This document shows, piece after piece, positions 12,042 through 64,000 of a DNA stretch of 64,000 bases. The position numbers were made by a program, and so were the translations under genes. Below the pieces are notes generated by a model. It saw nothing but the letters and a program-made list of their open reading frames with translations, had not been told where the DNA came from and searched no databases. This DNA is from Bugula neritina. Its lineage: Eukaryota; Animalia; Bryozoa. Within the stretch, counting starts at the first letter, position 1. Every line of letters begins with the position of its first letter. The stretch lies in NCBI GenBank assembly GCA_964035545.1, contig OZ037768.1:1302001-1366000 (forward strand), given 5' to 3'.

Positions 12042-15000
12042 CTTGTAGTGCTGTTCTGTGATCTAGAATCAGTTTGATATACTGAACATTCGCAGCCAAG
12101 TCCCGCTCATTAAGAACTATAGTCTAAGAGCTTGGGGCTAGTGGTTCTAAACTCCCCAGTTGGAACTAGCAGAATAGTTATACTAGTGAATAAAAGAATT
12201 CAGTCAAAATTATTATTATTTGATCCAATTTTGTGATTAATGAAATAGCTTTTCACCAGTTTGTAAATCAATCAAAGCTTTTTCATTAACAAATACTAAA
12301 CATAAATATTAAATAGTAATTATAATATAATCAATGAAATCACTCACAATCTTTTCACGTGTAACCTCATCAATTCAACGGTATTTGTCAGCAAAACAGC
12401 AGTTGGAAAACGTAAGTGGTTAAATCAAATTAAAATTTGCAACAATTTCAAAAAATGATTAAAATTTGTCAATTACTGTTGTGGTAATTTACCTGATGGA
12501 ACCAAAAATGATCGAAACTTGCTACTAGCTCCAACGAACTACGACTGCTATCTGCTGCAGAGATAACAGCATTGCAAGCATTATAATATAGCAATGAGTT
12601 TGTCCTTGCACGCCTCAGTGATTATGAGAGTACCAGGGGCAATGAAAGGTAACAGGTTTAGGGACACGAGTACAACGCTTGCATCGAATTTTAATACCGA
12701 ACTGCCAATACCCTGTGGGCTGTGGCCACTTTCAAATTACTATTATTATACTTAAAGTTTAGGTTACAAAATCCAAGGCCAGTGACCGACACTGTAGTAA
12801 TTCTAGATAAAACACAATGACTGCATCAAATTTTAATCTGCTTATATTCATAGTTTTAACCCATGAGTTTTTACACAACCATCATAATTTCACAATTTGG
12901 ACTATCAACCATACTGGTTGGTGTGTAATAGCATTATAATTATAGTGCAGACTCTAATTTGAAGACTAATTAACATGGCAGCAAAAATATTAATTCATTT
13001 AGGTTTACTACAAATGATAGTTTTACAACATGCAGCAGTAATGGTTATGATCAACAAGCCTTCTTTTCAGTAGAAACCTTGAAGATACATGACTTAACCA
13101 TTTAGTGGCTAGTTAAGAATGCCTTCATTTGGCCTCAAACAGTAATAAGGAACAACTAGCTGTTACAGACTCCAAGAGATTTTATGACCAATCAAATGTC
13201 TGTTTTATACAAAAATAAACCATAATTTCCACTGAAATGAAATACATGGATGTAATCCAACTCAGTGATGATTGCTGTATATTTATTACTGCCAGGTTTT
13301 TCTTCTAAAAAAAGGGGGGGGGGATTTTCAAGAAGAAGAGAAAGCTAAGATTACTAGAAGTGACTAGAACTACAGATTACAATAAGTTATCATATGAATC
13401 AACCCATTGCTAGCTATCAAATGATGATACTGTTATGAGAGTTAACTGAGACTGCTCTACTTATGATTACAACTAAGCATGACTGTCCAGTAGCTACATG
13501 GAGGTGAGGAAATAATAATATACAATGGTACGAATATAAGTACAAGATCAACTTCCAGCTGTTGTGAGACTATGATAGTATTAGACTAGTACAGCGTTAG
13601 TGTAGGTTGCACCACAAGAATAATATAGGCCCTTATTATGTATTTACTTTTGAGCCCAGTGGTGTCCGATATATGGGTTGGCTTACTAATAAAATAAACA
13701 TGAGATAACACCTTTCTAAAGTTTTTTTTAGATATGCATAGTTACTTTATCACAATGACAATGCTAATCACTAATGCCAAGTTGAAGTTTCTATTGCATT
13801 CACATTGCTATACACTATACACTATACAGGTGTACTAAATATAAGCTGAAGTTGAGTGTAGGCTTACCTGCGTTCCACTTGCAGTACGTGTTACTATGGT
13901 CATAGTGTGTACTGTGTATCAATAGAGTGACCAGAGTTCAATTTGTCAATTTGAGATTTCTTTCCTTGTGTTGAATAGTTCTTGCTAACTGCGCTCTGTT
14001 GCAAATGTATATTTATATATAACATCATCCCACTACAAAAAGTAGACCCTTGTATTCTATTGGTACATCAGGGATCACCCTGATAATGCGTGATAGTAGA
14101 TCATGTATAAAGTTCATGATCTATCTGATGCGAGCAAAAACGTAACCAATCATTACGCTGGAATTTCCATCATACATGGAAGATGTGAAAATATGAAGGC
14201 ATTCTGTAGATATAGCCTTTATTACTATATACGCGTTACGCAACGTTACAACGAGCATTGTACATTGAGTTTCATATAAATTCTCTTGCAATAATAATTG
14301 TTACTAGTTAGTTAGTCCACAATTCACAGAATAAAGAGTTGAATACGTTGCTAATCATGTTGGAAAACCCCCTACTTGCCAGTCAATGATCATCCATTGT
14401 TCATGAATTAAAAACATGACTTTGTGTAGAGCCCATGAACTGTATGTCTGATTGAGAGAGCCTATGACTCAGTCAGGATACTGTATCTGGGGAACCAGTA
14501 GTTTGTGTTTATCGCCGTTGCCATGGCTCCAAGAAAAACATATCAGGATGCCCACTATGGCTTTGTTAGTTCACCATTTCAGCACACTGATTTACTTAGT
14601 AATAGTGATCATGGTCAAACCAGATTTTTGTCAAAAACAAATGTTTATGATATGAAATTTGTCTCCATTACTAACTTTTTAACCATGGATACATTTTGGT
14701 GCCTAGAACATTGCTTCAAACACACAGTTTTAATTGTATTATACCTATATGAGAAAAACACCATACACTAGTTGCAAGTTGTTATTGTAGATACAAGGTA
14801 GATAGGATGAGGGTTTGTACAGTATAATATATAAAATATCATAATATAATTTATATATATAATATTAGAAATAAATATCTTTGCCACATAATTTCTATTA
14901 CTTTATGGTTTATAATGACTCAGCTGTGTCAAGGTTATTAGCTGCCTTTCAGGTTCTGCTCCAACCATACAGCACAAGTGGAAGCTCCTCTAGTATTGGT

Positions 15001-31620: not shown

Positions 31621-31923
31621 TTGAGTTTACAACTTTGATTCTAATTTAACATTATACTATATTATGTTATGTGCAAGCCTATGTACGATGCCTGCCAATA
31701 TACCAGGACATTACTGCGGCATTCATATAGAAGAAAATTATGAGAAAACTATTTTCAAGTACAAAAATGGTGGTAATATATTAGAAATCAGTTGAAAATG
31801 TGTAATGATTAGCAGTCATTTATAATTAAGAGAATTGAAAATCAACTAATGTAAAACATTATGCCATAGAACTGGTGTGAAAAATTTGGTAGACAAGACA
31901 CTTTACAGTGAAATAAGATTCAA
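31621..31923. repeat. Diverged direct copy of the CAPZA 3' UTR segment (copy 1)
   Basis: Aligns by eye with 39216-39600, e.g. shared TACAAAAATGGTGGTAATATATTAGAAATCAGTTGAAAATGTGTAAT and TTGAGTTTACAACTTTGA. Confidence 0.85.
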
Positions 31924-32766
31924 AACTATAGTAGTTTCATGTACTTGAGCCCTAAAAATAATTGTATTTCTGAATTTAGTCATAAATTTACAACCAAAAA
32001 ATTATTTATAAAATTTTAGTGTACGTTTATAAAAGATTGCTTAATATTTAACTTCAGAGAGTGACAATGACTTAAATTGATAAAAACAATGTTAACACAA
32101 ACATCTTCTAGGACCTAAAGCTACCCGAGCCCTCCGGTTAAACTTACACACTTTTTAAATATACTTTGGTTGAAATGTAAGTTTCTCATTGCAAATACTA
32201 TTTATATAAAATAAAGTAATTCGAAAAATTAACAAAGAAAGTAATACTTCTCAATTAACTTACTCATATTTATACAGGGTTGAATAAACTCAAAAACAAT
32301 TTTCATATAAACCAACAAATCAATGGAATTTTGAAAGTTTAAATATTAAGTACGTATAGATGTCAGAGCAATTGCAAAGTAGTAATAAAATCCTCAATGC
32401 AAAAATATGCATCTTCTATAACTCAGTAGAATGACTGTGATCTAAAAATAATAGGGATTTGAAATATATACTATATATTTAACCAATACTTAAATATATT
32501 GACAGGGGATGACAAACGCTTGAAATTTTCAGAATAGTGGGGAGCCAACATGCAACAATTGGCGGGTGGAGCCCATTAAAAGCTAGTATTAATGTGTTCC
32601 ACCTGCCAATTTCTGCATGTTGGCTCCCCACTAGATGTGCAATTGTTGTTATATGCTGAATTCCAATGTTGACCTTCACCTTTTACCCAACATAACAAAT
32701 TACAATGAGCGGTGAGCATTTCTAAATGCCAATTTAATAACATGTGCCCCAATTACCTAGTAACTG

Positions 32767-35700
32767 TTAGGATAGAAAGAGAGTAAGTAGTGTGGCTGCA
32801 AGGGTTAGACACGCAGACAAACCATGATATGCAGTAGACGAGGTTGGAGGTGGTGGTGGTACAAGTGGTAGTTTGAGTTCACTCCACGGATAGCTGGACG
32901 TATGCTTATAGAATACAGGTGGTTGGCCAATTGGAGCTGGAACCGTAGCTTTCATCTGAATAATCAACAAAACATATCACTCTGTCTTCTACGGTGATGC
33001 TTATTATCACACACACATATATGCATTAAATATTCAATCTCCTAACAATTTTCATTACACTTTTCAGCACCCACAGAACAAGTGTTTAAGCCTTCATATT
33101 ATAGGTAATATACATGCAAAATGCAATGCTATGCCATGTATGCATATAAATTACAATACTGTGCCATACATATATATTACAATACTATGTCATATATACA
33201 TATATGTCACCATACTATGCCATAAATATATGTTACAATACTATGTCATACATATATATTACAATACTATGTCATATATACATATATGTTACAATACTAT
33301 GTCATACCCATATGTTACAAGACTGTCACATATATTACAATATTACATAATATATATATATACATATATAACACCTACTGGTCCCGTGTAACTCTTGTCT
33401 GTCCAGAGATGAACCCAGTTTCCAGGAGGAATGTACACTTTCCATTCACTCACATTCGCCTGCAAATGTTTTATACAATATATTATCAAATTACTTACAC
33501 ACATTATCTAATACTATGCTACATAATATACATAAGATAATACCGGTAATATACATAATATACTATATACACTATATACATAACACGTAATATATATAAT
33601 ATATAACATGATATAATACCTGTAATATACATAATATACTATATACACTATATACATAACACGTAATATATATAATATATAACATGATATATTACCTGTA
33701 ATACGGGAGCAACTAGCAGCTCATCTCCATACATATACTCATGTTCAACCTCCCAGCTGCCAGAGTCTTGAGAGAACTCACTGGAAAGTGATCTCTGCAG
33801 CGGTTTGCCAGTGAGTTTATAGTCAGCATAGGCTGTCTTAGTGTAGTTACTCAGAGCTGTGTACATCTCAACTAGTCTGGCAAACTGTTTCATTGTATCC
33901 ACATCTGAATAGACCTGCCAATTCTCACTTGGTCTGTTGCCTGGAGCATTAATATGACACATATATTACATGTATATTACAAGTATATTACATATATATT
34001 ACATGTATATGACAAGTATATTACAGGTATATTGCAAGTATATTACATATATATTACATGTATATTACAGATATGTTACATGTATATTATAGATATATTA
34101 AATGTATATTACAGGTATATTACATATATATTACATGTATATGACAAGTATATTACAGGTATATTGCAAGTATATTACATGTATATTACAGATATGTTAC
34201 ATGTATATTACAAGTAGATAACAAGTATATGACATGTATACTACAGGTATATGACATGTATATATTACAAGTAATATTACCTTCATGAGTACGCATTGTA
34301 GGTGTGAACACAGCCATCTCAGCTGACCTGAGGAGAAGCTCCTTATCTCTCGTAACTCCAAACAGACTTGTATACAAACCAATATCATAATGAGTCATTC
34401 CAATTCCCTGCCATCAAACACCACCATACAGTTAACACCAGCAAAAGATGTGCTGTATACATTTATTTCTGATAAACGTTAAGCTACCTGAAGTCCAACG
34501 GAAAGGGCGGCTGGTATAACGGAGGGTAAACCATCAGAAACAGTGTAGTCGACATTCTGATCTCCAGCCCAAAAGAGTGTGGTGTATTTGGACAGACCAG
34601 CGTATCCTGCTCGCATCCAAAACACGACTTCTCCAAGTTTTCCAGCCTCTTCAACAGCTTCTCTGTTGAGTTTTGCCCACAGCAAAGGCCACTGATTGTG
34701 CAGCTCGAGGGCAGACTGACCGCTGAAGAACTTGGCGTTGTCTACCATTAAATACTCACTAAAGTCTGCCATCCAACCCGATATTCCCAGATCTAAGGCT
34801 CTCTTTACGATTCGAGCTAACAACAAAAGAGAAATAATTAGTTAGCAAACACTTGGCTGCCATATTGTAAGAATCCTCAATTTATGCATTTAGTGCACAC
34901 AAACAAGTATAAACAATAAACTGAAAATTCTTAAAATAGCGGTACAAGGAAAGAAACAGAATTGTCTTCTTTACCTCATGAGTGGATAACTCTTACAACA
35001 CAATACTGATTGATCTTTTATGGTGAGATAATATTACATAATACAATATTTATAATATAATTATCATAACTAGATTATTAAATAAAATGGAGTTAATAAG
35101 GCAAGACATCCTTGTATGTCTAAAACGTATCAACTTGCCTTTAACTGTAAAATTTTCAACTTCAAACAAAATACTTTACAAAAATCATTATTACTACCAA
35201 CTACAATCTGTACTCCATCAGTATATTATGTACAAGTACAAGAATAAACAGAAATGACTCATACTATAAAACAACCTAGCACATTATCGTAGTGACTCAC
35301 CCTTGTACCAGTTTACGGCAGCAGGATTAGTCAGATCGATAGTACCGCAGTAGAACTCCCCAAAGTCAGCTATGTATGTCTGATCAGAGCTGTTCTTTAC
35401 AAAGTAACCTAGACTGTCAGCTTCTTTAAACAGGGGTCCTTCTATGTTCAGGTACGGGTTTATGTAGACCAGCACCCGCACACCCTTGGCCTTTAGTTTA
35501 GGGATCTCAGTATCCAAACCTGTGCCAACATATTCCAATATAAATGAAGAGAACTTTCTAATGGGTTGTACTTTAACTTAGTAATAGTGGCAATAGTGTA
35601 ATAGTAATAATTTAAATGTCCGAAATAGAGTAGTTGCAGCTTTGATAGTCATACACACTTTTCACTAGATGTGGTAAAAATTATAAGAAACATTTCCCTA

Positions 35701-38700
35701 TTGTTCCCATTTCCTGTCGTAACAACATAATATTATCTACAGATATCATCTGCATATATTATAACTATTCTGAACATGTTTTTAAATTATTACCTTCAAA
35801 GGAATAAAGACAGAAATCACTATTAAGAAGGATTGAGAATTTAAGTATTGGAAAAAATTACAACCTATTACAAGAGTTGTCTACTCAATGAAATACATTG
35901 ACCGCCAATTAAAAAGCATATGAATAGACCTGGATACTGTTCATCATTCCACTCCCAGTTCCAGAACACTCTACTACCAAAGGAAGTCCTGATCTTCCCC
36001 GCCCAGTCCTGTATCCAGACAGCTGATACTTTGACTCCGTTATCTTCTACTTTATTGAGTAGCTGATTCATCCTGTCTGTACCGCCTTGCAGACCCACAA
36101 TCGCTCCTTCAGATACCCAGTCCGGCAACTCGGGCATCACACCGGTGGCCTTGACATAGACTTGAGAAAGATCACTGATTGTCATATCGACGCCCCCGGC
36201 AACCTGGAGTGACCTTGAAAAAGAAATAATAAGCGACTCAGTCATTTCCTTCAGAATTCCCAACATTTAACAGCTAAGATTAAAATTCATAATCTTACAG
36301 ACATACTCAATACTTTGTAGCCAGAAATTAAAATGAAAAACATGTTAATAAAGTTCATAATCCACCAATTTTGTTGTTCATAATCCATCAATTTTGTTGT
36401 TCAAAAACAGGAAAACACAAAAATCCGATGTGGCTAAACTATTGGAGTGGAAAATATCTCAATATGAAATCAAAGTAGTATAACTCCAAAATTGTTACAT
36501 AAAACCGGTCAAGCACTACCACTTACCCAACATTACCATGCACTTCAAGTTCATGAACACTAGTACTTGTAAAATCTAAGATGGTGTAGTAGGTGGCAGT
36601 AGAGTGCACCATGTAGCCTCTGCTAGAGAAGAAAGTTGGCTCCCCATAGTAGGTGGTGTAGTAGTCGCCACCCGCACCGCCAGACAATGTGTCAGCATAG
36701 AACGTGACTATTGAGGACTTGTTTCTCCCGACACCTTAAATCACACAATTCTAGTGAGAAACAAGAGACAGGGCAGCCACCTCTCAAACCTAGACTCTAA
36801 ATTTAATGACAAACACAATAAACTCTTCCCACCAGCAATTTCCTTCCATATTTCATACTTATAAAAGCTATGAATAATTTTAATATAAAAGAATTATGTA
36901 ACACACTTTATTCAATAGAAGAGATGCTGATAAAATGAATCACATAAATTTACCCTGTTCTCTAGTCCAAATAGGGTATTTTCTACCCCGTAGATTGAGG
37001 GAGGTAAACTGCTCGCCCCCTCCGTATACATATTCAGACTCCTGGGCTACAAACCGTATCCATATTCTATCATAACCATCAGGCAAGTCAGTGAATTGTA
37101 TTTCACCAAATGGATCTCCATCCACAAGAGTTAGAGTAACCTATCAAAACGAATATGCATTGAATAAGAAATGGAGAGAAGGAGATTGAATGTAAATTGT
37201 GAATATTCAAATATATTTTTAGTATGACTGTTATCTATAGTCAACAAACACACACCTCTGTGTGGCTCTATCAAGGAGCCTACTGATAAGATGGCAGTAG
37301 CCTGTGTTTAATAGATAACAGCAATACTTTATGTGCTCAGGCTGAGTAGGTGCAGACATGCATAGCCTTAGTTCCTATTACATTTCTTAGATGAGAGATG
37401 GAGAGTCCATGAAAATAAAATGAGCACTCTTCGAATCTAAGAGCTAAATTTGGAAATTAAAAACTCAAGTCAAATCTACAAATATTTTTTCTCAGAGATA
37501 GTTTCATGCAAAATTATTTCCTTTCCTTTAGCTAGTAGTGTACTGAGAGGGAGAATTTTGTTCTTGAGAAAACGGGTAAAATTTATTATATGAAAAGATA
37601 TACAAGCTCTTAAATTTGACGCTGGAGTTGGAAATATTATGAGCTCTATACCATGAGCTCTACAATATAGTAAATTACCGCAAGAGATGAGTCGCTGACA
37701 GAGGTGAATTTATATTGTCTATGGGATACGGCTGTTAAAAGAGACAACGGAATTCTTCGCTCAACGGTGTCCACAATGTCAAAGTTTCCATGGTACTCAT
37801 TAAATGTAGTGGTTCCAGAGCCAACATAGACACATGGATATTGGCCAGAGTGCTCTATAACCTAGATGTCAATGGATACATGACACGCACATTCCATATT
37901 ATTCTATAACTCTGCATATGTTCAAAGTCCAGCAATGATTAGAGAGTCTGTGAACATGGTGTGAGACTTGAACTGATAAATAGCAACCCTAATCTTAAAA
38001 GCAAATAAACTTGAAGCTAACTTATACCTGTAGACCTAGTATGATTACTATAACTATTGCTATTAGCAGTTACTAAGTTACTCATGCTATTTTAGTTTTA
38101 CCAAGGTGAATTTATTACAAAACTATCAAGACAAAAAAATCATTGATTTTCCAGTATAAGTTTTACTGAAATCACTTTATAAATATTACATAGAGTGACA
38201 TTAACATTTACATTCATATTGACATTGCACCCGTAAATTAATAACTAATCGGAATCCTAATCCTAAGGCTAATGATAATTACAAAAATACTAATAATAAT
38301 GATGATCACTAACTATTACTTATTACTAGACTGCCACTATAACTATTCCTGCATTTCTTTTAAGTTTTTGCGAGTTACAATCCTACTAATACCAATAGTA
38401 ATAGTAATACTACGTCAATATTTCAAGTTCATACTTGATAAATTTATAGTCGTAGCTTTTGATTTGAACTTGAAGGCCGGAATGAGAATCACAGCCAGAA
38501 AATAGTTCTATTTTAGTATTTACAGTTTTAACTTACCTGCATGGCTAATATTAATAACAACTACAAGTTAACCGTAAACACAAAAATATATCATGACACA
38601 ATAACTATTAGTATTAGCATTAATGTCAAAAAATACAATTAATATTAATATTATATCTTAAAATTATCTTGTAATCTACCTTGACGGAGTTGATTGCAAA

Positions 38701-38817
38701 AGAGGTTTTCCCTGCTGTTGAGCTATCCGTATCAACAGTCCATGTGTTAAGTGCTGCCGACGCCAAACAACACACATTTAGCACATGCAAAGCACAAATA
38801 AAATTTAATTTAAACAT
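32767..38817 (-). CDS. GH31 glycoside hydrolase, sulfoquinovosidase (YihQ)-like, ~729 aa, with signal peptide and GPI-anchor-like C-terminus
   Basis: 11 phase-consistent exons: 38680-38817, 37679-37861, 36954-37140, 36527-36734, 35930-36213, 35301-35519, 34488-34816, 34281-34407, 33696-33940, 33379-33459, 32767-32955 (2190 nt). Motifs: YGGGEQF, WTREQGVGRNK, GAGGDYY, GLQGG, WIQDWAG...TSFGSRVFWNWEWN, YINPY, GWMADFSEYL (nucleophile), WAGDQNVD (acid/base), HYDIGLYT, TPTMRTHEGNRP, YMYGDELLVAPV. Confidence 0.9.
33150..34277. repeat. Three AT-rich tandem repeats in the last three introns of the GH31 gene
   Basis: ~30-bp unit at 33150-33345; 76-bp unit at 33541-33702; 11-bp unit with a 132-bp higher-order duplication at 33960-34277. 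Confidence 0.85.
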
Positions 38818-39215: not shown

Positions 39216-39600
39216 TTGAGTTTACAACTTTGAATTTAATTCAAAAATTATACTTTATGTTATATGCAAGCCTAAATATAAAGTAGAACTAGACACCAGA
39301 AATTTTTATAGATTGTAATTGATAAATTGCATGTAAGTTCAAGATGACTACCAATATACCAGAAAAGCTTTGTTAACGAAGTCCAACTTTACGGCGACAT
39401 TCATATATAAAAAACTATGAGAAAACTAGTTTCAAATACAAAAATGGTGGTAATATATTAGAAATCAGTTGAAAATGTGTAATAATTAGCAGTGATTTAT
39501 GATTAAGAGAATTGGAAATCAACTCAAGTGAAATATTATAACATGGAATTGGCGTGAAAAACATGGTGGAAGAGACATTTCACAGTAGAATAATGTTCAA
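39216..39600. repeat. CAPZA 3' UTR segment duplicated at 31621-31923 (copy 2)
   Basis: Starts about 23 nt downstream of the CAPZA stop codon (39624-39626); same orientation as copy 1, with two extra internal blocks. Confidence 0.85.
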
Positions 39601-39623
39601 GACCTAAAGAGCAGAGAGTCCAT

Positions 39624-48596: not shown

Positions 48597-50718
48597 TTTA
48601 CTTCCTGTTGAGTAAATACTTCGGACAAATCCGACAGATGCGTCAATTGTCGTTTATGAAGGTTTACAATGACGGCTTGTTGTTTGTTGTGTAAATAAGT
48701 TCTTACGATAATCGTAGCAGACCACATTGCAGACCGTTAGCGTGTTACAGTTTCGACTGCTAGCCGATCAATTCATCGTTGCATTGCTTTACAAATGTCC
48801 AACCAAGCCTCAACTTTGTAGCTTCATTGCAAAATATTATAATGTTACACAGCCTTTTATTGTATAAAGTTGTGAGATGTGTAATTTTTATCATTCAGCT
48901 AAAGAAAAGAGTTCAAAAAGGAAAACGGCAGCTAGTATAAATAATACTTTGTTATAAACTATAGCTATAAATATTATTATATCAGAGTCAGACGCTCAAG
49001 GTCAAAGTCAATCTAAAACTAAAAGTAAAAGTGAAACTGGAAGTAAAACTCAAACTGAGAATCAAAGTGAAAGTGAAATTGCCAAGTGCCAATGGTCGTG
49101 AAATAACATGAATCTAGGAATAAAGTAAGTAGCAAATTAAATTTAATTGTTAGTTAAATCAAGTAAAACCCGAACAATAGACATAGACTTACACTTTCAT
49201 TTTGTTTAACTTTTAATTTAAAGCAATGTTAGAGTAAATTCGAAATAAATTTCATCATCATCATGCATTATGGTAGTACCAACTACCAGTAGTTAGTGTT
49301 ACTGTTAGTGCAGTACTAGTAGTTAGCTCTCAGCTCTGCATACAGTAATCATAGGGTTAGATGTTGATTACTGATGGTGATAGTGATAGTAACAGTAGAT
49401 GAGAAAAGGTGTAATACTAATACTAGCTCAAATAAATAATAGTAATTTTCTAGAAGTATGTACATTCAGTACGAGTATATATTATAAATTTAGTGCAGTA
49501 ATACTATGTTGATGCTAATAAGCACAGTAGTCATGGTGCGCTAATGGTAACTAATGATAACTATCACTATGAGTATGGTGATAACTTGTACATCAATTTA
49601 TACTAGTACAATGTAAGCAAAATAGTTATTTGTAAAACTTTTAGCGTAAGCTAGGTTCTATTTTTAGTAAAACTAGTAAAATAATTTTGATCTTTATAAA
49701 CAGGTATACCTAATTAATCTACTAAGTCTCATGAGGTTGTTGATGCGTTATAATTTGTGTAGAATAGATTGGGCAGTTTCTGGTGTCACTATTATTATAT
49801 ATAGAAAGAGCTGTTTCTTTGGATCGGCATACCTTAGATTACTAATTGTGAACTTATATAATTATTTGTTGAATGGCTTTTTCTATAACTTCTGAATTAA
49901 ACTAATGATATATTTTTCATAGTTTTTGCTTCAAATTTATGGTAATTTTTTTATTCCTCTTCTCTTCGGTTTCCTGGAAGCATATTCCACAATAAATGAG
50001 ACTGGCTTCTTGCGCTGCGAGTTAAAAAAGCTTGCAATGAAAACATGCCTGCATCATATCCATTACATATTTCACTATTTATTAATTGGAATACATAATG
50101 CAAACTTTGAGCACTCTTTATAATAGCAAAAAGCTTTTGCATAAAAACATGCATCAACAAAGTTAATGAGCAATGGTAAAAATTCAAATTAGCACATTGA
50201 GAATTGGTTATAAGCAACAGAAAAATAATATATCAAGCATATAACTTATGCATAAAAATCTGATAAATTGTTAGCAGTTTAATTATATAATATAAAGCAA
50301 CTATTGTAAGTTCTTTTACAATATTTTAAGCATAAAATGTTCAACTATAGTGGTTAGCATAAGTTTGTTGTTATTTGGTGAATTAATGCTTAGAAACTAA
50401 AAAAACTAAACTTTTAAGTTGAAATATTACAAAGGATCAAAACGATTTAAGTTATTGTTGTTTAGTTAGTTCACCTCAAAAACAATTTCTCAGAAAATAG
50501 TTGACACAAATAGATATGTTTGAGATACAAATAGCTATCCAATTACAAATATAAACATAATTTTAATGGCACGTGCGTTAAGTACTAATGGTTAAAATGA
50601 TTTGGCAATCAGTTAATAGTTTAAACTAAAGCAAATAATGCATCATATAAAAATTATGGCTTTACTCTAATGGAAGCAAGTGTTTTCTTAACGATATAAT
50701 ACTCAATCGATATAATAC

Positions 50719-53700
50719 TCAATCGATGCATACCTTATCTTCAGGTACACATAGGAATAGCTTTTGAATAAAAGTGTAAAATGAGCGAGTGGCTCTGAAA
50801 TATGCAGCGGGTTTGTTTTTCCAAGCAACTCCGACAGCGTAAACCGGCAGCCCACATAGACAAATGGCTATGCCAATGAGAGAAGATTTGGCTCCTTCAT
50901 ATAGAGTCATACACAGTAGAAACAGGCAGAATACTAGGTATGCAATGGGGAAGAAGAGGGACACCTAAAAATAAATTTGTACACACCATGAGTGCTATAC
51001 AATAGAAAGCAACAGTTAGTTGATGTTTTTATTGCAAAATTTGTTAGACAAATGATTTGTACAGTAAGTTAACATGTATGTTACAGTATCTGAGAAAAAT
51101 CAAACTCATATCAACTTGTATGTCGTTGATCTAAAGTTAAGGATATTTTATGGTTGCTACATTTGCAAAAAAATTATCATGCACTAATTGCGTGAAACCC
51201 AAGCAATTTAATATCATGTTTCTCTTTAGAGTTCAATTGATTGAGTATCGCATTTATAAAGAGATAGGATATATTTTATCTAAACTATGTTATTAGATAT
51301 TATAGTCATTGTGGCAATTTTGTATACTTTTTTGTAATTTTTACCTTGAGTGGTCTTGCTAACTCTGGATATTTCTTCCTCATATAAATAAGACTAGAAA
51401 CTGTTAGCCCAATGAACATTGTTTCAAAAAATGTCCCGTAACTAATCAATCCTTGTACGTCTGATGATATAGTACAGCACACAGCAACAAAAGCCTGAAA
51501 TATTAAAGTACAATTTATATTCAACTTAGTGTTTTATAAATGTTTTGATTGACCTCTAACCTCCAAATAGAAGTTCCACTATGGTGTTAAGAAAATTTGA
51601 GACTAGAGCAAAAGTATTGTCATCAAGTCCTTACAATTTTTTAGATTTAGTAGTCTAAAATTAGGCAAGCATGGTATTACTTTATCGTCTTTTTAGTAGT
51701 ATATAAAGTAAATGCTTTGCTGCTTGAAAATTGTTCAAAAATAGTACAAAAAAGTACCTGAAATGCTATTGAGATGAGTAGTAGTAGTAGTAGTAGGACT
51801 GGAATGTATTATTACGAATTTCTCACCTGAAACACAACAGAGACTATTGGAGTCATCCACTTTGTACTAACATAACCAATAGGCTCAGGGAGTTGTCCTT
51901 TCCTTGCTGCTACATAGTACAGCCTACAACAGAGCCACAGTTATAATGTGCCGATAATGCATGCAAATTAACTATGCAATTAGCTGTTGTCTAAGTATAT
52001 AAAGTAGGATGTGGGTGCATGCAGTAGAATGTAACTATTTAGTAGAATACAGGTGTACGCTAGTACACCTACTGCTATAAAAATGAAATACCATCTAAAA
52101 ACTCAAGTTCATTTTATGTCCGACTTGCATAACTTTTTGTAAGATAGTCTTTCACAAACGTAATGATTTCAAGGTTTTCACCTGGAGGATGTGAACATTG
52201 CACCGTTTAAGCTTCCAAATGTAGAACAAGCTACAAACACTGGGATAATCCAGTTCATCTTGCCAAGTGCTTTGTTTCCAAATGCCTAAAAATATAATTG
52301 TGCATAATCAGGTCTTCAGATATAATAACAACAATAAATATGTATGCATATTATGCTTTCTGGTATATCAGATTTTATTTACATCGATCACATCAGGTTC
52401 AAGGCAAAAATATCTTTCTCAGCAATTTAGAAAAGTAATTAATGAGAGAAAACCTTGCTCTACTGGTGCGGATACATTATTTTCACAAGATCAAAAGCTC
52501 CATGATCTCTGCGTAGTGGTTGCTTTTAAACAAACAAAAAATCTTTGAAGTGGTTTTTCAGATACTCACCACTGCAACTGCGTCTGCGTCTTTCATCTCA
52601 TCTTGAGAGAGCACTGTGAAGAATGCAACATTGGCGCAGATATACAAGCTTGTGATAAGAGTTATGGAAATCCATATGGCTTTTGGTAGAGTTCTGTTAA
52701 ATTGATTGCAGCAATATTGCAAAATAATTCATAGTTTTCAAAGTTATTAATATATTTTTGACTTGCGATCTATAGACTATTGGCTTGAAATACTAGCATA
52801 AAAGAAAAATTTTATCACAGTAAGGGTACATGTTAATGAGCAATTGTTCAAAGTTTTATTGACTTTATCACCAAACATGTGTTAGGTGCAGAAAGATTGG
52901 CTATTTCTGTTACAGCAAATTATCTCTCATCATGCTGATGGCATGGTGAAAGGCAAGGCCATGTATAGCCACTCCAATGCTCTTGTAAACAGGGGTTCTG
53001 GACACTTTAAACAAACATGAATTTTTGTGTTAGGTGCTAAAATAGACCAACATACTTCTCAGGGTTCTTCACTTCTTCTGTAACCAGGTTTAGATAGTTC
53101 CTAGCAAAAATGCAGTAATATACATAAACATAAACATCTAACTAAATGTCTCAGATGAGAATTCTTAAAATAGGCTTGACTTTAGGTGATGGTATTATTC
53201 GACTCTATGAGAAAGCTTGTTATGTGAGAATTTGATCCTATTTATTTATAAAAATTGTGTGAAAAAGAGATCAGCTGTTTCTTTAAAAGTGGCATAACTA
53301 CATGTTTCACTGTTTTAAAATGTAATAAAGATTATTTACATACCAACCAGAGTATGAAAACACCCCAGCATAGATTCCTTTTGCCCAGTCTACTGGTTTA
53401 GGACTTGTACCTTCCCACGGTTTTTTCCAATACTGGGATTTGCCTGCAACAGTTGCATATTGCAATTCATAGAAAGTTATATTCGTTATATAACAATTAA
53501 ACTTGTCATTAGACATATAATGTAATTTTAAAACTGCCAGATAAGCTTTTAGGTAAACATTCACACCAATCTTGTCTTTGATTAGTCATATATTAGCTAC
53601 TAATTGATTAAACCTCAGCCAACCCAAGTATTATACTAAGAATTAGTGTATTATGTATATTCATGCTTTAAAGTGATTTGTTCATTGTGTGCTGCTTTAT

Positions 53701-56101
53701 GCTACTTCGTAAATTATTGCAATTTGCGATAGCGTCCCATTTTTGGCCTGGACACTAGTTTGTTATCTACTCTGCAATCCTAGACCTTATAGTTCAAAAG
53801 TAGTCAGTATACGAACCTTTTCCGATCCATACAAAGCCAGTTACTGTGATGGCCAGCAAAGCCAAAACCTTGGCTACTAGAAACACATTTTGAAGTCTTG
53901 CTGCCCATGTGACGTCCACACAGTTGATAATAGCCAGGAAAACTGCAAAATTATATTGATATAGAACATATACTGACTTGAAAAATAGCAATGGAATAGT
54001 GTACAACAGTACTAAAATTATTTGCCATCCAGTTAATCAGTGGCTAGAACTGTAAGGTTTTTCAATAGTCCAATATAACTCATGCAGCAAATTAAATGAG
54101 AAAGTAATTGTTAAACAAGCAAGGTCAAAAGAGGTCAAACACATATTCTTGCATGTACCTATAAACATAGTGTCAATTTTATTACTGCATGACTACTAAA
54201 TAAGATACATGTAAGTTTGTCTTTACTTAGTTTACATAACTGACCAAATGAGCAAATAATTTTGTTTTAGCAGGTTGATATATTTTTATTTAATTACAAT
54301 ATTACAAAACATTAACAAATTTTGGGGTTGGAATAAACAATGCTTTTGAATGATGTATTAAAACATGTTACTTGGTGGAGTTACTACACACTCTTGTGTC
54401 ACCGATTAATAACCAGTGACACAAGAATGAGTATATAGAGCATTTCTCCTACCTTATTGTATGACTAGCAAAAAGTACTTTCTGGTGGAACAAATCAGTT
54501 ATTAAAGATTTAGAATTTATTAAAGATTTAGAATTTAAACTAACTGCAGCTGTATTCATAAATGCATGCAGTTAAAATATAGTCGCACAATTTTTTGTCG
54601 TAACAGTAAAATAACATAAACCAAAACAAGTATAAGTATAAAGACAGCACCTTATAAATTGAAAATATGTAAAGGCTGTTCTAATTATTACACAACTATT
54701 GTATTTAATTGTAATTTAAAATTACAAAGCTTGCAGTAATTGAATTTTTACTCAAAAGCTATCATTCAAAGAGTACATAGAATTATGTAAAGTATGTTGG
54801 AATTTGTGTAGAAAGATATCTTTACTCACTAATGATGAATCCCGCTGTCAAGATAACAGCACTTTCTGGTGGTGTGCAGTCTGGGTATATCGGTACCAAT
54901 ACGTAGTTTGCAAATGTAAGGGCAATGATTGCAATGGCAATCGGGAAGACTATCAGTGAATATGCCCACACAAAGATAAACTGTATTACATTTCCATAAG
55001 CTTTTCCTAAAAATTATTGAAAAAATATCAGTTTTTTGAAATGCAAGACAATATTTGGGTGAAGACTAAAAGTTTACAACTTACAAACTTACAACCATTT
55101 GTGTTAATAACAACCCAGCCATTAGCAGGTGCTATAATAGTATGCCATTTATTGTAAAAATTCTTTAATGCTTTGTTCATTTAATGCAACAAATTCAAGC
55201 TACTTTTTGTTTTTTCAGAAATGGTTTGTTTTTACCAATTAAACATTGGAACGATGAATGAAAATAAAACATTTTATTCAAAAAGTTTATGCACAGCAAC
55301 TATCATTCGAAAGACTAACTGTTAACATTCAAATCTTTGAAAGTAAAAGCTAGCTGTTTACATAATTTAGATTTTGAATGTCAAGCAGGCAATAGGCAAG
55401 TTAAATCTGGCTTCAATATTGCGCTAAGCTTTAAGCATGTTAAAGCAAAAATGTTTATTAGCATTAATTGTTTTCCTAGGAATCTTGATGAAGTAAGAGC
55501 TACAGCAGAACAGAGTTTTATAGCATGTCCAATTAATTACGTATTAAAACTAATGTTTTAATTAAGAAGCGCTTCAGATTTGGGGAATAATAGATAAATA
55601 TTTGAATAAGTACCTGAATACTTGAATAAAAATAAATGTGCTATTTCACTTATTACAGAATGTACTAAATGAGGCATACCGTTAACTGTTTCTGCAATAT
55701 TTGAAATGCCAGATATTTCTCACAAACATCGGCACTTTTTACAGTATCTATATAATTTAGCATCGTTTACACAGTGATTCCACACCAAGTTCTCTCTATA
55801 GACACTTACCTATGTATGAATAATCTCCACCACTAGTTTGAATGGAAGTTCCCAACTCCACGTATGACATGGAACCAATAGCGGCAGCGAGGCCTCCAAT
55901 GCACCACAGAATAAGCGACAGTCCTATGCTGCCTGCGTTCTCTAAAACTCCAACTGGAGATACAAATATTCCACTTCCAATCACTAATCCTGTTAACATT
56001 GACACAGCACTGAATAATCCCAGATTCTTCTTCAGTTTAACTTGGCCATCTTCAAAAGTGATGGACTCCATCGAAATTTTCCCATTTGCTTTGTTCGCCA
56101 T
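50719..56101 (-). CDS. SLC7 family L-type / heteromeric amino-acid transporter light chain, paralog A
   Basis: About 10 exons (approx 55810-56101, 54829-55006, 53797-53942, 53344-53443, 53057-53100, 52570-52693, 52182-52283, 51827-51923, 51345-51494, 50719-50963). Motifs: [15 protein letters not shown]...SGGDYSY, PIYPDC (heavy-chain disulfide Cys position), [12 protein letters not shown]...[30 protein letters not shown]. Confidence 0.9.
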
Positions 56102-56149
56102 GCTACTGCTGTTAGGTCTGTAAGGATTAGACTCCTCTGGTAGTCTAAA

Positions 56150-57400
56150 ATATTGTATACTGAAGGTGTAATAGCAGTGAAAAGTTAGGCTTATATGAAA
56201 TTATTACCTGCTTATGTTAAAACCAAAAGTTCTCAACTAATTACTACTGTGGCATACCTCTCAATGTGCTGTAGGTGCAATACTCTAATTCACCCAATTC
56301 TATGAATGCTAGACTGATTTCATATAATCACTCGAAACAAATGTAATGATGCATGCACAAAGACCTATTAATTAATGCTGCTGGTGTGGCTTTGCTTTCT
56401 TTTTATGTGTTTCTCCTCCTACTAATGCCATTAGATGCTAAAATAGTAATTTATAGCCAATACTCTGAAATGCATCAGTCTATATATGTAATTAAATCTT
56501 GCCTATATGCTGGAAATCATAGAGACTGCCTAATCATTTTTGCACTATCTTTTTTTAGCTTTACTACCTACACAACATGCAGCTGAACTTTCTACAATTA
56601 TAAGGAATATAACGAAATGCCAACACCCCTGTACTCTTGACTCTTGTTGGCAAAATGACATTTTGCTAACAAAAGTTCATCTCTTATGAAATTATATTGT
56701 ACATATAGTAGTTCAGAAAAAATAATAATTATGTACGGAGTTTTAATTTAATTACTGCTGACAATTATACGGTAAGGTACAGAATTCTTTGAACTATGTA
56801 AAAAATTCGTTAGCTGGTCATTAAAAAACTCAAAGATTTATGTTCTTGATGACATAAAAAAAATGAAAGTATATCTTTTATACTTTGTCTATTTCCACTA
56901 GTCTGTATTAGGCTATGTTAGATCTGGAAGATGAAGCATGTTTATATACGGAATACTGTAAAGGAGTCTATACCATTCATGGTGTTTGTTTATTCATTAA
57001 AAGGTACAAAACAATGTAGGCTTCACAAGGCTTTAGACTATCACGACTATGTCAAATATTGCAGTGTGAAATGGTATTGGTTGCGCTAAGAATATTGATT
57101 TGTCTAAGTCTATTACGTACAGTTGTATATAGTAGATATTGTGTGTAGTGTACGGCAAACAGTGTATATATAGTTGCCCGTGTCCCTTAGCAATACTACT
57201 AAACCCCTGCCTGCAGTAGTAGTAACAGTAGAGGGAATCTGTTATTCATTCAGTATTAATTGATAAACATTGCATCAGCACATTCACAAAGAGAAGCTCT
57301 CAACTCCTGATTGCACTCCTTAACTGTTCTATTGTTGCTGTTAAGGAATTGGGAGTAGCAGACGTAGAGCAGTATACTCGACTTCAACAGTTCTCGCCTA
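56150..57400. promoter_or_regulatory. Divergent intergenic/promoter region between the SLC7 paralogs
   Basis: 1.3 kb between the two start codons; TATA-like TATATATA near 57165; a probable 5' UTR intron of paralog A at ~56145-56207. Confidence 0.4.
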
Positions 57401-57411
57401 CACCAACACAA

Positions 57412-60400
57412 ATGTCGTCAGAATCGGTCAAGTCAGCAAATGGCTCCGTGGGCCTCAAGAAAAATTTGGGACTATTCAACGCCATTGCTATGGTGGTGGG
57501 CCTAGTGGTGGGCAGTGGAATATTCGTATCACCAGTGGGTGTCTTGCGTAGCTCTGGCAGCATTGGACTATCTCTTATACTATGGTCCGTGGGAGGCATT
57601 GCGTCAGCTATTGGCTCTATGTCGTATGTAGAGTTAGGAACTTGCATACAGACAAGTGGCGGAGATTACTCTTATATAGGTATGGCATGTGAAAGCACTC
57701 TAAGTTACGTTAACTACTCTTAGTTAATTACTCTTCTACAAATTTATGTTGCTGCCATTAGTACAGAGCACATTGCAATGGTGTAAGAGCCAATGCGTAT
57801 AATATGATACTGGTATAAAGTGATAGACTTCTACTTCCTTAATGATTTGTTGCATTAAGCTTGGAGCTAAATAACAGCATATTATTTAGCTACACTTAAA
57901 ATATTATTAAGCAATACGTATTTCACAGATTATACTAATTTTTATGCAAAATGAAGTTTTCTGATTTAACAGCATTTTTCACATTTTTGAAAAAAATTCA
58001 GCAGATGTGATTGGCTGCTCTCTTATGCTGCCAAGCATACTGGAAGCTGCCAGTAAAGAATATAGTTCTCTAAAATTAATATGTTATATCCTTGGCCTTG
58101 TTGGTAATCATTTTAACAGGCCTATTTTATGAGCTATTATGGGGTTTTTCACCATAAATATGCAACTTTTAAAAACATGAAAGTAACTTTGATGTGCCAC
58201 ACTTTTTAAGATATAAATTGCACTCACCGTCTTAGCTTGGCTGCTGATGTAGTATTCCTCAAAACCTCTGAACTTATATGTATTACAACGCTCACTTGAT
58301 TCTGTATTTGCTGCCTTTGATATATTGGCTCAGCAGCGTTACTAGGTTCTGTCAATAACACTTTGACTTGACTAGCTTAGCATACGTTTCAAACACATTA
58401 ATGCACATAACGGTTCAATATTTACTCTTTCAATACTTGTTTGGTTCAATACTGAGACTTTTGTTTAATTCTGATATTGTTTGCTTTTTGTAGGAAAGGC
58501 GTTTGGACCAGTTGTACAGTTCCTTTTTGTTTGGGCGTTTTTACTTATAGTTTTTCCAATTGCGAATGCAATAATCTCGTTAATATTCGCCAATTACATA
58601 CTCGTACCGATATACGCCAACTGCCCGCCTCCTGCTGATGCTAAGACTTTGGTGGCAGCAGTAGTCATCGGTAAGATAGTCTATATGCGGCATTCAACTC
58701 CTTACACATAGACACATGTTAGCAGTAAATTTGTCCTTAGTTTTTTGAGATGAAGAAATTGCTATAAAACTTATAATGAGTCAGTCACTATAGATGACTC
58801 ACTTACAGTCACTACAGATGACTCACTTACAGTCACTATAAATAATTCACACGCAGCAAATTATGCAATCACTCTAGATAACTCTTGTTCAATGCTCCTC
58901 AAACACATGCTGATGTGTCCAGTACATAATATGTTTAGCTGTAGTAATTTATCCTTGCTACCCATTTCCTCTAAGCATAGGCTTGAAAATTAGCTAACCT
59001 CTATGTTTACAGAAACATGCATTGCATTATTAGTATATTAGTTTATTTAACATTGCTTCTTATTTTAGTCCTGCTGTCTGCAATCAATTGTTTCAACGTA
59101 ACGTGGGCTGCCCGGGTCCAGAATGTGTTTCTGATTATGAAGATAGCTGCACTGCTAGTTATCTCCGTGACCGGCTTTGTTTGGATAGGGCAAGGTGAGG
59201 GTCACTAATTATACCCTATTAGAGTCAAGTGATAGAGACTAAATGTCAGTGTCATTTGTAGAGATGAACATTTCCGTGGGCTGGTGAGCTGGACTTTTGA
59301 TGCTGTGTAAATTTGTTCATCACGTAATAGTGAAACTTTACATGATACACTATATATAATATGTATTTTAATGTAAAAAGTTCTATTAATAGAGTGTTTT
59401 GCAGTGTTTTGCTGCCATTTTTCAAGTAATAAGATGAATAAATAGCATTGAGCTTCACCGTTAGTTGGGGTCACATACTAGTAAACATGTTTGCAGTATA
59501 CTCACATATTTTCAAGATATTGCACTAATTTAATTTACCATTGGTTAGCCTCATTAACTACAAAATTAATAATTTCTTTGAAATAAAACCAAAATCAGTT
59601 TTTTGGTGGTTTTCTGTCTCTTGGCATACCATTAGCAATGGCAATAACAAAATTTATTAAATGTTAAAAGCAGCTTGCACCAACCACTTGTTATATAAAA
59701 TAAACTATAATGTAATGCATGTCTGGCAATGTGCTTGCTTTAGTAACACTCCTGGCCTTCATGTTCAGTTACTGATTTTGTAAATTGAATAATGATTGAG
59801 AAGTTTGAAGACGACATTTGACTTGTTCACTCTGAATAAGAATGCATAAAGAAAATAGATGCATCAGTTTGCATGCAGGCTGAGCGATTTAAAAAAGCTG
59901 GGAGCAATTCACCAGGTCAATGCTCTATTTACAGTTCTTTGTTTATTCAATTGAAACAATCAAATTGTATAGACTTTCATCTATACAACAACAACGCTTG
60001 GTTCAGTTATTTTCAATTATGAAGCTTGGTGTTCAAATGCAAGTGATAGATGAATAATTATGGCCCAATGATTATTTCATTGACATATTTGGTGGTTACT
60101 AAGTGCTGCCAACTGCTGCTACTGCAAATATTTAACTTCTAGTTGATACTAATAGGTGAAGCTGTCACAACAGAGTGGCCTTTAGTCAATGCTGCCCTGA
60201 CCTTGAAATATTGCAGGGTGGCCTTACTGAATCAGAAAGGAGTATACCTAAACTATTTAAATAACTTGCAGAAACTGTTAAATAAAGTGCCTAAAATAAT
60301 TTCTCGACTTGTTGAAAAGCTGATAAAAGAATAAAGTTAGGCTGCTAACTGTATTACCTTGATATACTGAGCTTGGAATAAGTTATTTTACTCTAGTAAA

Positions 60401-63400
60401 GCTAAATTATAGCTTTTGTAAAAGATTACATTCAGTCAAATAATACTGGCCTCCTATTATCACAATAACACTTTTATGTAGCTGTATTTCGCTATTTTCT
60501 TTTACAAGCTATACAATTACATTCTTGTATGCTACGATACTAATATTTATGTCTTTGGGATCACGTATTTTGCTATTGTCATGTATTGTATATGTTTAGG
60601 TAAAACACAGTTTTGGGATGAACCGTGGGAAGGTACAAGCCATGAGCCAGTAGACTGGGCAAGAGCAATTTATTCTGGCGTGTATTCTTACGCAGGATGG
60701 TGAGTTAGGCTGTCATGTGTAACCCCCCTTACTCTGCCTTGTTACCTAAACTTGGGCCAACTGGTTCAGTTTAGTATGCATGATTCATCAACTCAAGAGT
60801 TGTGAGTGAAGTTCCTCTAAAATGCATCACACTGAGACACAGTGTGCCAGACTGGCCACTAAAGCTATAAACAAGACAAACACACCAGGTCATTGGCCAC
60901 TCCAGGTCAATATATAAGATCATGAAGATCACTTTCCTTTGGAAGAGTGTAGACTGTGAAACTGACACCAGCAACTCTGGAAGACAAGGGGGACTCAAGG
61001 AGACAGGGGGGGACTCAAGGAGACAGGGGGGGGGGGTAGGGGGGACTCAAGGGGGTGGGGAGCTCATCATCAACTGAAACTGAGCCTTCACAGAGATTAG
61101 CTAGAAGTATTATTTGCTAATTGGTGGCATCAAATGACTGTCAACAGCAGCTGAGTTCAGATTAAATAATTAAAACAAGATTATAAATATTTCCTAAACT
61201 CATTAGTACAGATTATTGCTTTTGTGCCGAAGTTGTTGGTGAAACTTCTTCCCAGAGCTTCACAGCTGCTATGTACTGTCACACTTCAGGTGTGAGTGGC
61301 TACTAGAACTCTATTAACGCTTGGCAAAGGTTTATACTATTCACTACTATATTAACCTAGCAATGCTTTCCACTACGTAATGCCCCCAACTAATAGCCGA
61401 GTTTTTAAATGTGTAGCTGGTTGGGATATTCAGAAGGTAACTAACATTTAACGATCATTCATGGCCTTCAAACCCAACACTTTAGCTGACACTCCAAACC
61501 AGGGGACATAACTTCTACACATAAGATACCTGATAGAGCAATGCTGGGTCATGTATACATATATACATGTATGCAAGTATACTTAAATGCTTTGTGCAAT
61601 AAAATTTCTCATTTTTTTCCAAGTTACTGTAGTAATTCCTTGGCTAGGAGTTATAGAATACAATGAATAGAGCTGGTTTCTAACAACATAATATTATATA
61701 TCTAATGTTTTAGGAACTACTTGAATATACTCACCGAAGAAGTCAAGGCTCCAGAAAAGTAAGATTATTCTGCTTACAATTCAATATAAACTTTAATAAC
61801 ACAGAATAACATTGGTCTGGAATAACATAGAATAATATGGAATATCATGTGGTAATATAGCGTAATATGTCAAGGTATAAAATACAGTTTTGTCTGAATG
61901 GGCATGGCGTGTAGCTATTTCCATGTAACTCTACATAGTATATATACTGTATAGCTTTATGTAGTGTATATATTGTAATAACGCCGTTGTATTAGCTCTG
62001 TGTTTGTATCAGAGTGTTTAGTATCTTGTTACTGCATCCACATTAACGCTGGAATATATAATAATATCGTAACTGTATCTCCAGTAGTAACGTATCTTGT
62101 AGCCATGATGGTATATTTATTACTAGTAGTATTATTATGTAATAAATGTAAAAATGCAGGATGAGTTGCAAAGCATGTAGCTTTAAGCTGGTAAATGCTA
62201 GCAGCTATTATGTAATAAAGTACACTACTCCCTCCATATTTCACTATGCTGCTGGTACAGACCTTAATTCGTGACATAGTGATAGTATGATAACATATTT
62301 AACTTACTGATCAATTAAATCCGGCCATTTTGTCTCTATACACACCTACATAAGCCACAAAACAAGGGCCCAAGCCCTTCTCCTAACCCATGGAACTTCG
62401 TAAGAAATGGATTCGTGAGATATGGAGGGTGCACAGTAATACTATTAGTTGGGAAGTTTTCTTGCAACTGTGTCGCTTACCAGTTAACATAAGATGCCTT
62501 GGTCTATCGTAGAACTCTGCCCAGAGCCATATGGATATCTATACCTCTCATCACAGTTCTGTATGTGTGTACCAACATAGCTTTCTTCACTGTGCTCTCC
62601 AAACAGGAAATGCTAGATGCTGACGCTGTCGCTGTTGTAAGTGTCTTGTCTTGGTGCAGCATCTGGCACTATGCTACACTGTATTGCGTTATGTCCCACT
62701 ATGTCAAACTGTGTCACACTCTGTCATACTATGTCACACTCTGTCATAGCTTGTCATGCTGTGTCACACTATGTCATACCTTGTCATGCTGTGTCACACT
62801 GTGTCACACTATGTCACACTGTGTCACACTATGTCACACTGTGTCATACCCTCTCATGCTGTGCATTGTATTTCCTTGCTTTAAGATGTAAATATACCTG
62901 ACTGTCTTATTATACTTTAAGTCTTAAGATGTGAATACGCTTGCGTGTTTTATTCACAAAAATGCTGACTTGGGGGAACTACTTAAAATGCTGACTTGAA
63001 GTTTTCTTCAGCTTGTAGTTTCAATAAGCACAATTAGGCTGTTAGTTGTACTAGTTGCAGCAACTACTGACATTTAACTCTACACTAATCACCATACTGT
63101 CTGTAAATAAACAGCTGCCAAACATGAAGTTTAGCTAATGGGTTGGAGGGAAAATATTTATAATTCAACAATTCTAACAATTTGCAAAGTATTAAAGAAC
63201 ATGCTATGCAATAAGCATTGAGCAAATGTTTCGCTAGTTTTAAGATGGTGAAAGCAGCTCTTTAGATAACAATATTGTATTTTCCACAATTGCCTGCACT
63301 TAGTATATCATAATTTACAAAAGTATTTGGATAAAGTTTTCGACTGGGCACTCAAATTTGACCGGTATAGGGCGCAAGGCTATGTCAAGGTTAGAAGATG

Positions 63401-64000
63401 TCACAGGATGCCTAATAGCCTGAAGTATTGAAAGTTTTTATAATCATTTAGAGATTTGTTTTAGAAAGTTTTCACAACGGTATACCAATAAACTTACGAA
63501 AACAAGACTACAATAATAAGATAACTCCAAATAAAACTGTATTATAATTTCTAAAGCAAGTTCTTATTTCACTGATGTCTCTACTGTTTCAGCTGTTTGG
63601 AAGCAAGACTCTGGGTGTGATGTCATGGATTATCCCCATATTTGTAGCTTGCTCTACATTTGGCAGTCTTAATGGGTCTATATTTGCCTCATCTCGGTAT
63701 GAACACTAGAGCTATCTGCCCTGTACTGTGCTGTATAGTAGTATAATACCGTGTTACGCAAGTTATAACACATATATTGTGTATATATGGTTACTTATGG
63801 TGAGAAATGTGATGTGTATACTTTGTGTGCTAAAGTAGTATTTGCTGCGTGATAACTGAATACCTGTTCATGAATTTTTTTAAATTGAAAATTAACTACC
63901 AGCTGTTGAAATAAAGATTTATTAACTCTGGAATACTGCATTCAGGCTGTACTATGTGGCAGCAAGGAAAGGACAACTCCCTGAAGCAATTTCTTATGTT
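57412..64000 (+). CDS. SLC7 family L-type / heteromeric amino-acid transporter light chain, paralog B (3' end beyond the window)
   Basis: Exons approx 57412-57679, 58494-58670, 59069-59194, 60600-60700, 61714-61758, 62513-62636, 63592-63696, 63946->64000. Same motifs ([50 protein letters not shown]) and same intron positions as paralog A. Confidence 0.9.
62700..62860. repeat. 10-bp tandem repeat (TGTCACACTA/G)
   Basis: About 15 degenerate units in an SLC7-B intron. Confidence 0.85.

Follow-up and report, generated by a model that had tools for sequence, protein, structure and literature searches.

A sulfoquinovosidase gene with a predicted leader and a probable GPI-anchor signal in the bryozoan Bugula neritina

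The turnover of sulfoquinovose (SQ), ~10 billion tonnes a year, has been credited to microbes (PMC10755693, PMC13436972), and the word 'animal' is absent from a 2026 review on the subject. The microbial sulfoquinovosidases (SQases) of subfamily GH31_13, namely E. coli YihQ, Agrobacterium SmoI/AtSQase and the E. rectale and B. megaterium enzymes (PDB 5AED, 5OHS/5OHY, 6PNR, 8R56), are soluble and carry neither a signal nor an anchor. Here we analyse a 64,000-nt window of the Bugula neritina genome (GCA_964035545.1, contig OZ037768.1, positions 1,302,001 to 1,366,000; coordinates below are those of the window), which holds on its minus strand, at 38817-32767, a gene that resembles these enzymes in fold, catalytic Asp pair and the QQRWY sulfonate-binding set, but differs from them by having introns, a leader and a tail.

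SQases of animals were recently reported by Uchida et al. (bioRxiv 10.64898/2026.02.11.705467, 13 Feb 2026) in 65 species and nine phyla, including Mollusca, Arthropoda, Bryozoa, Brachiopoda, Echinodermata, Hemichordata and Chordata. Signal peptides were predicted in most of them, and glycosylphosphatidylinositol (GPI) anchors in numerous molluscs as well as certain echinoderms and chordates, and in Mercenaria, Aplysia, Branchiostoma and Tridacna the orthologues were expressed chiefly in digestive organs. No downstream SQ enzymes were found in Tridacna, and the authors proposed that SQ serves the microbiota as food and that diacylglycerol or glycerol goes to the host. In RefSeq, dozens of animal proteins are labelled 'sulfoquinovosidase-like'. 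The B. neritina gene is a fresh example of the enzyme kind described in that preprint, and the idea itself is not new: it belongs to the same clade, has the same seven key residues, a predicted signal peptide and a candidate C-terminal anchor signal, and the role proposed for it, digestion of algal sulfoquinovosyl diacylglycerol (SQDG) with SQ passed on to microbes, is the same. A preliminary description of this DNA had taken the anchored architecture and the animal-encoded role as its novelty; both were anticipated by the preprint, as were gut expression and the supply of SQ to the microbiota. The preprint, however, rests on prediction and RNA-seq without an assay, and gives neither a bryozoan GPI anchor nor intron positions. 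The present analysis adds GPI-like tails in two bryozoans to its distribution of anchored forms, and a dating based on introns, a word that does not occur in it.

Our reading, to which we assign a probability of roughly 0.72, is that the gene is a single-copy bryozoan member of an old animal GH31_13 SQase clade, that its product is GPI-anchored and would cleave algal sulfolipid at the lumenal face of digestive cells, and that it was inherited vertically.

Gene model and family assignment

By six-frame translation and splice-site reading, the gene consists of 11 exons and is intact. The coding sequence of 2190 nt specifies 729 codons and a TAA stop, all ten introns (80-818 nt) run from GT to AG, none of the 11 exons contains an in-frame stop, and an in-frame stop lies directly upstream of the ATG. 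A pseudogene was rejected. The locus is on contig C4 of the 216-Mb genome and is single-copy; a genome-wide search found no second SQase copy. Ten of the exons had a match, and for nine of these the best one was a Watersipora subatra protein, with 50-86% identity per exon. This bryozoan orthologue, annotated as 'sulfoquinovosidase-like' (P0267; GCA_963576615.1, OY755164.1), matches all ten B. neritina introns in position and phase, which provides independent support for the gene model. The Watersipora gene differs by having two additional introns within the region that encodes the enzyme, and its neighbouring genes are others. The exons are as follows, all on the minus strand.

38680..38817, minus: exon 1; ATG, predicted signal peptide covering roughly residues 1-21 (38817-38755), and the N-terminal domain's first strands; intron 1 has the same position and phase as in Watersipora
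37679..37861, minus: exon 2; N-terminal beta domain, PRK10426 positions 30-74, 50% identity to Watersipora
36954..37140, minus: exon 3; N-terminal mutarotase-like domain with WTREQ at its end, PF13802 (E 2.6e-9) and PRK10426 match
36527..36734, minus: exon 4; GVGRNK and GGDYY motifs, PRK10426 (E 1.3e-14), 75% identity to Watersipora
35930..36213, minus: exon 5; Q281, Q307, R320 and W323 (YihQ Q262, Q288, R301 and W304; sulfonate and hydroxyl recognition)
35301..35519, minus: exon 6; TIM barrel, PF01055 (E 4.9e-8)
34488..34816, minus: exon 7; nucleophile D424 (34766-34764, GWMADF) and acid/base D492 (34562-34560, WAGDQ), 86% identity to Watersipora
34281..34407, minus: exon 8; Y528 (YihQ Y508, sulfonate) and H557 (YihQ H537)
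33696..33940, minus: exon 9; end of the barrel and start of the C-terminal beta domain, PF21365 (E 1.9e-8)
33379..33459, minus: exon 10; C-terminal beta domain, aligned to Watersipora and to YihQ 624-646
32767..32955, minus: exon 11; last part of the YihQ fold, then a proline stalk (P700-P704), S706/S707 as candidate omega site, and a hydrophobic tail without charges before the stop

Intron 8 contains an AT-rich repeat at 33962-33998.

For the family assignment, the exons were searched singly and the Watersipora orthologue served as proxy for the whole-protein fold and tree. Exons 2-9 and 11 gave collinear matches to NCBIfam PRK10426, the YihQ family (exon 10 was outside that scan), and PF13802, PF01055 and PF21365 were found in this order, which is the three-part GH31 architecture of an N-terminal beta domain, a TIM barrel and a C-terminal beta domain. 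Exon 7 scored 108-135 bits against six solved SQase sequences in the PDB, as opposed to 32 bits for the next GH31, and the significant matches of exon 5 were to SQase structures only. Alignment with E. coli YihQ (NC_000913.3) showed 276 identities over 566 aligned residues (49%). Importantly, all eight key residues, Q281/Q307/R320/W323/D424/D492/Y528/H557, are those of YihQ (Q262/Q288/R301/W304/D405/D472/Y508/H537), so the GH31_13 catalytic pair is present, with D424 at the place of the nucleophile D405 and D492 at that of the acid/base D472. An AlphaFold prediction for the Watersipora orthologue (mean predicted local distance difference test score, pLDDT, 89.5) superimposes on SQase crystal structures with a template modelling (TM) score of 0.90 and a root-mean-square deviation of 1.2-1.9 Å, as against a TM score of 0.67 for YicI. 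Exon 7 folded alone as a single sequence reached a pLDDT of 44 and yielded no usable model. On residues, profile scores, tree and fold, the conclusion that the gene encodes a YihQ-type (GH31_13) SQase is well supported.

The preliminary description proves accurate in coordinates, exon count (11), length (729 aa) and quoted motifs by our splice reading, in its catalytic and sulfonate-binding residues, and in its account of a hydrophobic leader and a C-terminal extension. As to grouping with YihQ rather than with MYORG or the alpha-glucosidases, it is borne out by the score gaps and by a tree in which YicI is the sole row from another GH31 subfamily; the tree does not include MYORG, GAA or GANAB. 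An identity as MYORG or alpha-glucosidase was rejected. Two further enzyme types catalyse the same reaction: the SqgH clade, typified by an Alteromonas GH31 SQase, has other binding residues and forms a separate GH31 clade, whereas the B. neritina protein has the YihQ set, and SqgA of GH188 is NAD+-dependent (PMC12780224, PMC13436972). Elsewhere in the B. neritina genome we observed at least eight other GH31 loci on contigs C1, C2, C3 and C9, two of them in tandem at about 31.0 Mb on C3.

Leader, tail and proposed role

Both ends of the 729-aa protein are hydrophobic, with a best 11-residue Kyte-Doolittle mean of 2.1 at each. A signal peptide of about residues 1-21 is predicted by hydropathy and by conservation in Watersipora, where an in-frame ATG 12 codons upstream of the annotated acceptor gives a clean hydrophobic leader on an exon equivalent to B. 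neritina exon 1. The Watersipora RefSeq model itself has, around 12520-12800 of its locus (L002), an N-terminal addition of ~214 residues whose splice junction falls midway through the leader; these residues are apparently spurious. At the other end, five prolines (P700-P704) are followed by the small residues S706/S707, which lie 23-24 positions before the C-terminus, and then by a short spacer and a hydrophobic end, with no charged residue in the last 12 positions and no cytoplasmic segment. The Watersipora tail has the same layout, its small-residue omega candidates lying 27-28 residues from the end, and the tail region of exon 11 is 54% identical to it over 54 aa. Since Watersipora has an equivalent leader and tail, both termini are conserved between the two bryozoans. 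In the Watersipora model the tail forms a low-confidence linker and then a final helix, both outside the enzyme fold. A third bryozoan-like SQase fragment was found on an ENA metagenome contig (L003), and a search with the C-terminal part of the Watersipora protein found no spliced B. neritina protein.

Among 38 animal homologues, 26 had a hydrophobic C-terminus (those of molluscs, echinoderms, hemichordates, amphioxus and tunicates), but not one of 95 homologues of bacterial size did. Since such tails are found in most of the animal homologues, the anchored remodelling is, as far as these sequences tell, a shared old animal trait and not peculiar to B. neritina. The B. neritina genome has a gene for the transamidase subunit GAA1, and the protein has four N-glycosylation sequons. 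These features make it probable that the B. neritina SQase carries a GPI anchor.

Several observations weigh against the anchored digestive enzyme. The GPI assignment was made by rule of thumb and not by a trained predictor: by that rule an omega site, a short spacer and a terminal hydrophobic run are found in both bryozoans, whereas NetGPI, as run by Uchida et al. (bioRxiv 10.64898/2026.02.11.705467), predicted zero anchors in bryozoans. The literature searched contained no assay of an animal SQase. In 12 RNA-like runs from four studies, 0.08-0.10 of the sampled words of the gene were present; for a spliced transcript of identical sequence, arithmetic gives ~0.30, and the result is at most suggestive. 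Finally, the search of the B. neritina genome for YihS, YihT and YihV, in which none was found, used E. coli queries and had no positive control.

It is therefore necessary to consider that the protein is a true SQase whose C-terminal tail serves as a transmembrane or retention segment or is trimmed away, in which case it would act in digestion as a lysosomal, or a secreted and soluble, enzyme rather than a GPI-anchored ectoenzyme. Intracellular digestion is common among filter feeders. In addition, the 12 animal homologues with no hydrophobic tail at all imply that anchoring is dispensable, and the preprint predicts, besides no bryozoan GPI anchor, transmembrane helices for some members from echinoderms and chordates. 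A transmembrane or retention segment, however, agrees poorly with an end that has no cytoplasmic part and no charge, and the spacing of the omega candidates in both bryozoans is a typical GPI layout. We consider this alternative unlikely, though it is the one that deserves most attention.

If the anchored enzyme is assumed, the following mechanism can be proposed. The signal peptide would take the protein into the endoplasmic reticulum, where GPI transamidase may cut near S706/S707 and add the anchor, and the enzyme would then be located at the lumenal face of digestive cells, either at the cell surface or in the endolysosome. There it would hydrolyse the alpha-sulfoquinovoside of algal SQDG, lyso-SQDG or SQ-glycerol. 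GH31 enzymes act by retaining double-displacement hydrolysis with an Asp nucleophile and an Asp acid/base. Thus, D424 is the predicted nucleophile and D492 the predicted acid/base, while R320, W323 and Y528 would hold the sulfonate. The animal would gain glycerol or acylglycerol and clear an anionic lipid. The yihQ gene of E. coli sits in a sulfoglycolysis cluster; because downstream pathway genes of the E. coli type were not found in B. neritina, free SQ would probably be excreted or go to bacteria. A role in digestion is plausible.

The pocket might alternatively have been kept for another anionic alpha-glycoside, such as a glucoside bearing sulfate or phosphate, or a glycolipid of host or microbial origin, or the enzyme might be mainly a general alpha-glucosidase. 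Room for such divergence exists, as several paralogues are kept in echinoderms and molluscs and no animal member has been assayed. Disagreeing with this explanation, all specificity residues are identical to those of YihQ, enzymes of the YihQ type are reported to be inactive on para-nitrophenyl glucoside and xyloside (PMC12780224), the distribution of SQases tracks algae-eating aquatic animals in the preprint, and several further GH31 loci are present in the B. neritina genome. A change of substrate is hence quite improbable.

Age and origin of animal SQases

Trees were supported by the SH-aLRT (Shimodaira-Hasegawa-like approximate likelihood ratio test) under LG+G4, and cover animal, bacterial, ciliate and green algal sequences, with fungi, plants and choanoflagellates not included. 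The animal SQases, 28 named proteins plus two unnamed ones from Logan whose tails are animal-like, form one clade (support 100), nested within a clade (97) of YihQ and Firmicute and spirochaete SQases. With Watersipora as proxy and its own exons 5 and 7, the B. neritina SQase, which has one PF01055 domain and a predicted signal peptide, falls in the non-rotifer animal clade; placed separately, each of the two exons is sister to Watersipora (support 99-100).

The introns carry the dating. Six of the ten B. neritina introns recur at matching phase and position in Patella, Lingula and Penaeus (for two of the six the match is to within 1-2 alignment columns), and one recurs in Branchiostoma, Lytechinus and Ptychodera. 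Therefore, the gene was already spliced in the protostome ancestor, and it was probably present in the bilaterian ancestor. A transfer from a bacterial symbiont that was recent and confined to this lineage, or contamination of the assembly, to which ~49% identity to bacterial SQases and the nesting of the clade among bacteria might point, was ruled out by the shared introns and the tree, there being ten spliceosomal introns, a large contig with the gene between CAPZA and a CCDC6-type gene, and grouping with animals.

The preliminary description had suggested an old horizontal transfer. The old origin stands, with shared introns and one animal clade, and any transfer predates the protostome ancestor, as judged from the shared introns and the single animal clade among bacterial SQases. 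The transfer itself is unproven: a clade of animals with the green alga Cymbomonas was rejected (approximately unbiased, AU, test, p = 4e-5), and one of animals with Paramecium was not (AU p = 0.41). The tree is compatible with an ancient transfer from bacteria, which is the likely, if unproven, origin. Comparison of intron positions found none common to B. neritina and the Paramecium SQase. Thereafter, the gene would have been inherited vertically from at least the protostome, and probably the bilaterian, ancestor.

As to the anchor, the preprint suggests a gain in molluscs. Because two bryozoans have GPI-like tails and such tails are spread among deuterostomes, a reasonable alternative is that the anchored form is the ancestral animal state: a single bacterial gene acquired in the bilaterian stem would have been given a leader and an anchor, the latter being lost repeatedly later (arthropods, pulmonates, Lingula, giant clams). 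We offer this tentatively, as possible rather than probable.

Three observations outside the animal clade are recorded here. First, the Paramecium sonneborni SQase (P0251, L010) has a hydrophobic leader and two tiny introns and, in the unconstrained tree, groups apart from animals with enzymes of the Firmicute type; it is possibly a separate acquisition by another eater of algae or bacteria. Second, a deeper metagenomic group of SQase-like GH31 proteins (P0133, P0116, P0038, P0132, P0032, P0077) has signal-peptide or lipoprotein-like leaders and may comprise extracellular bacterial SQases. Third, a JGI metagenomic protein of 4269 aa (P0001) has two SQase-like matched stretches.

Genomic surroundings and biological meaning

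The gene is flanked by the F-actin capping protein alpha (CAPZA) gene and a CCDC6/DUF2046 gene, and is bracketed by two copies of a direct duplication of the CAPZA 3' region, the only two copies found genome-wide.

39216..39603, no strand assigned: upstream copy, starting ~20 nt after the CAPZA stop; probably the CAPZA 3' untranslated region
31621..31926, no strand assigned: downstream copy, 85% identical to the upstream copy, 840 nt past the SQase stop

The simplest reading of the bracketing copies suggests that the SQase gene moved into the CAPZA-CCDC6 interval with duplication of the flank. The SQase ATG lies only ~400 nt from the upstream copy, which leaves little room for a promoter. About 130 nt past the SQase stop lies an inverted repeat (32535-32633) with 45-nt arms that are 89% complementary (folding z = -7.3); since related pieces occur on contigs C5 and C7, it is probably a small element resembling a miniature inverted-repeat transposable element. 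Further along in the window, ~50700-64000 contains at least two paralogues of SLC7/LAT-type amino acid permeases in opposite orientation, with 66-89% DNA identity in matching pieces.

For further work, the B. neritina gene offers a clean single-copy candidate for an enzyme assay. Its GPI-like tail would also correct the picture of how anchored forms are distributed, and its shared introns help to date the gene. Provided that the SQases of animals are active, the gateway step of SQ turnover falls to grazers and filter feeders, a case already made in the 2026 preprint. Should the anchor prove ancestral, filter feeders would run an active brush-border sulfolipid hydrolase, opening the SQ cycle in grazer guts.

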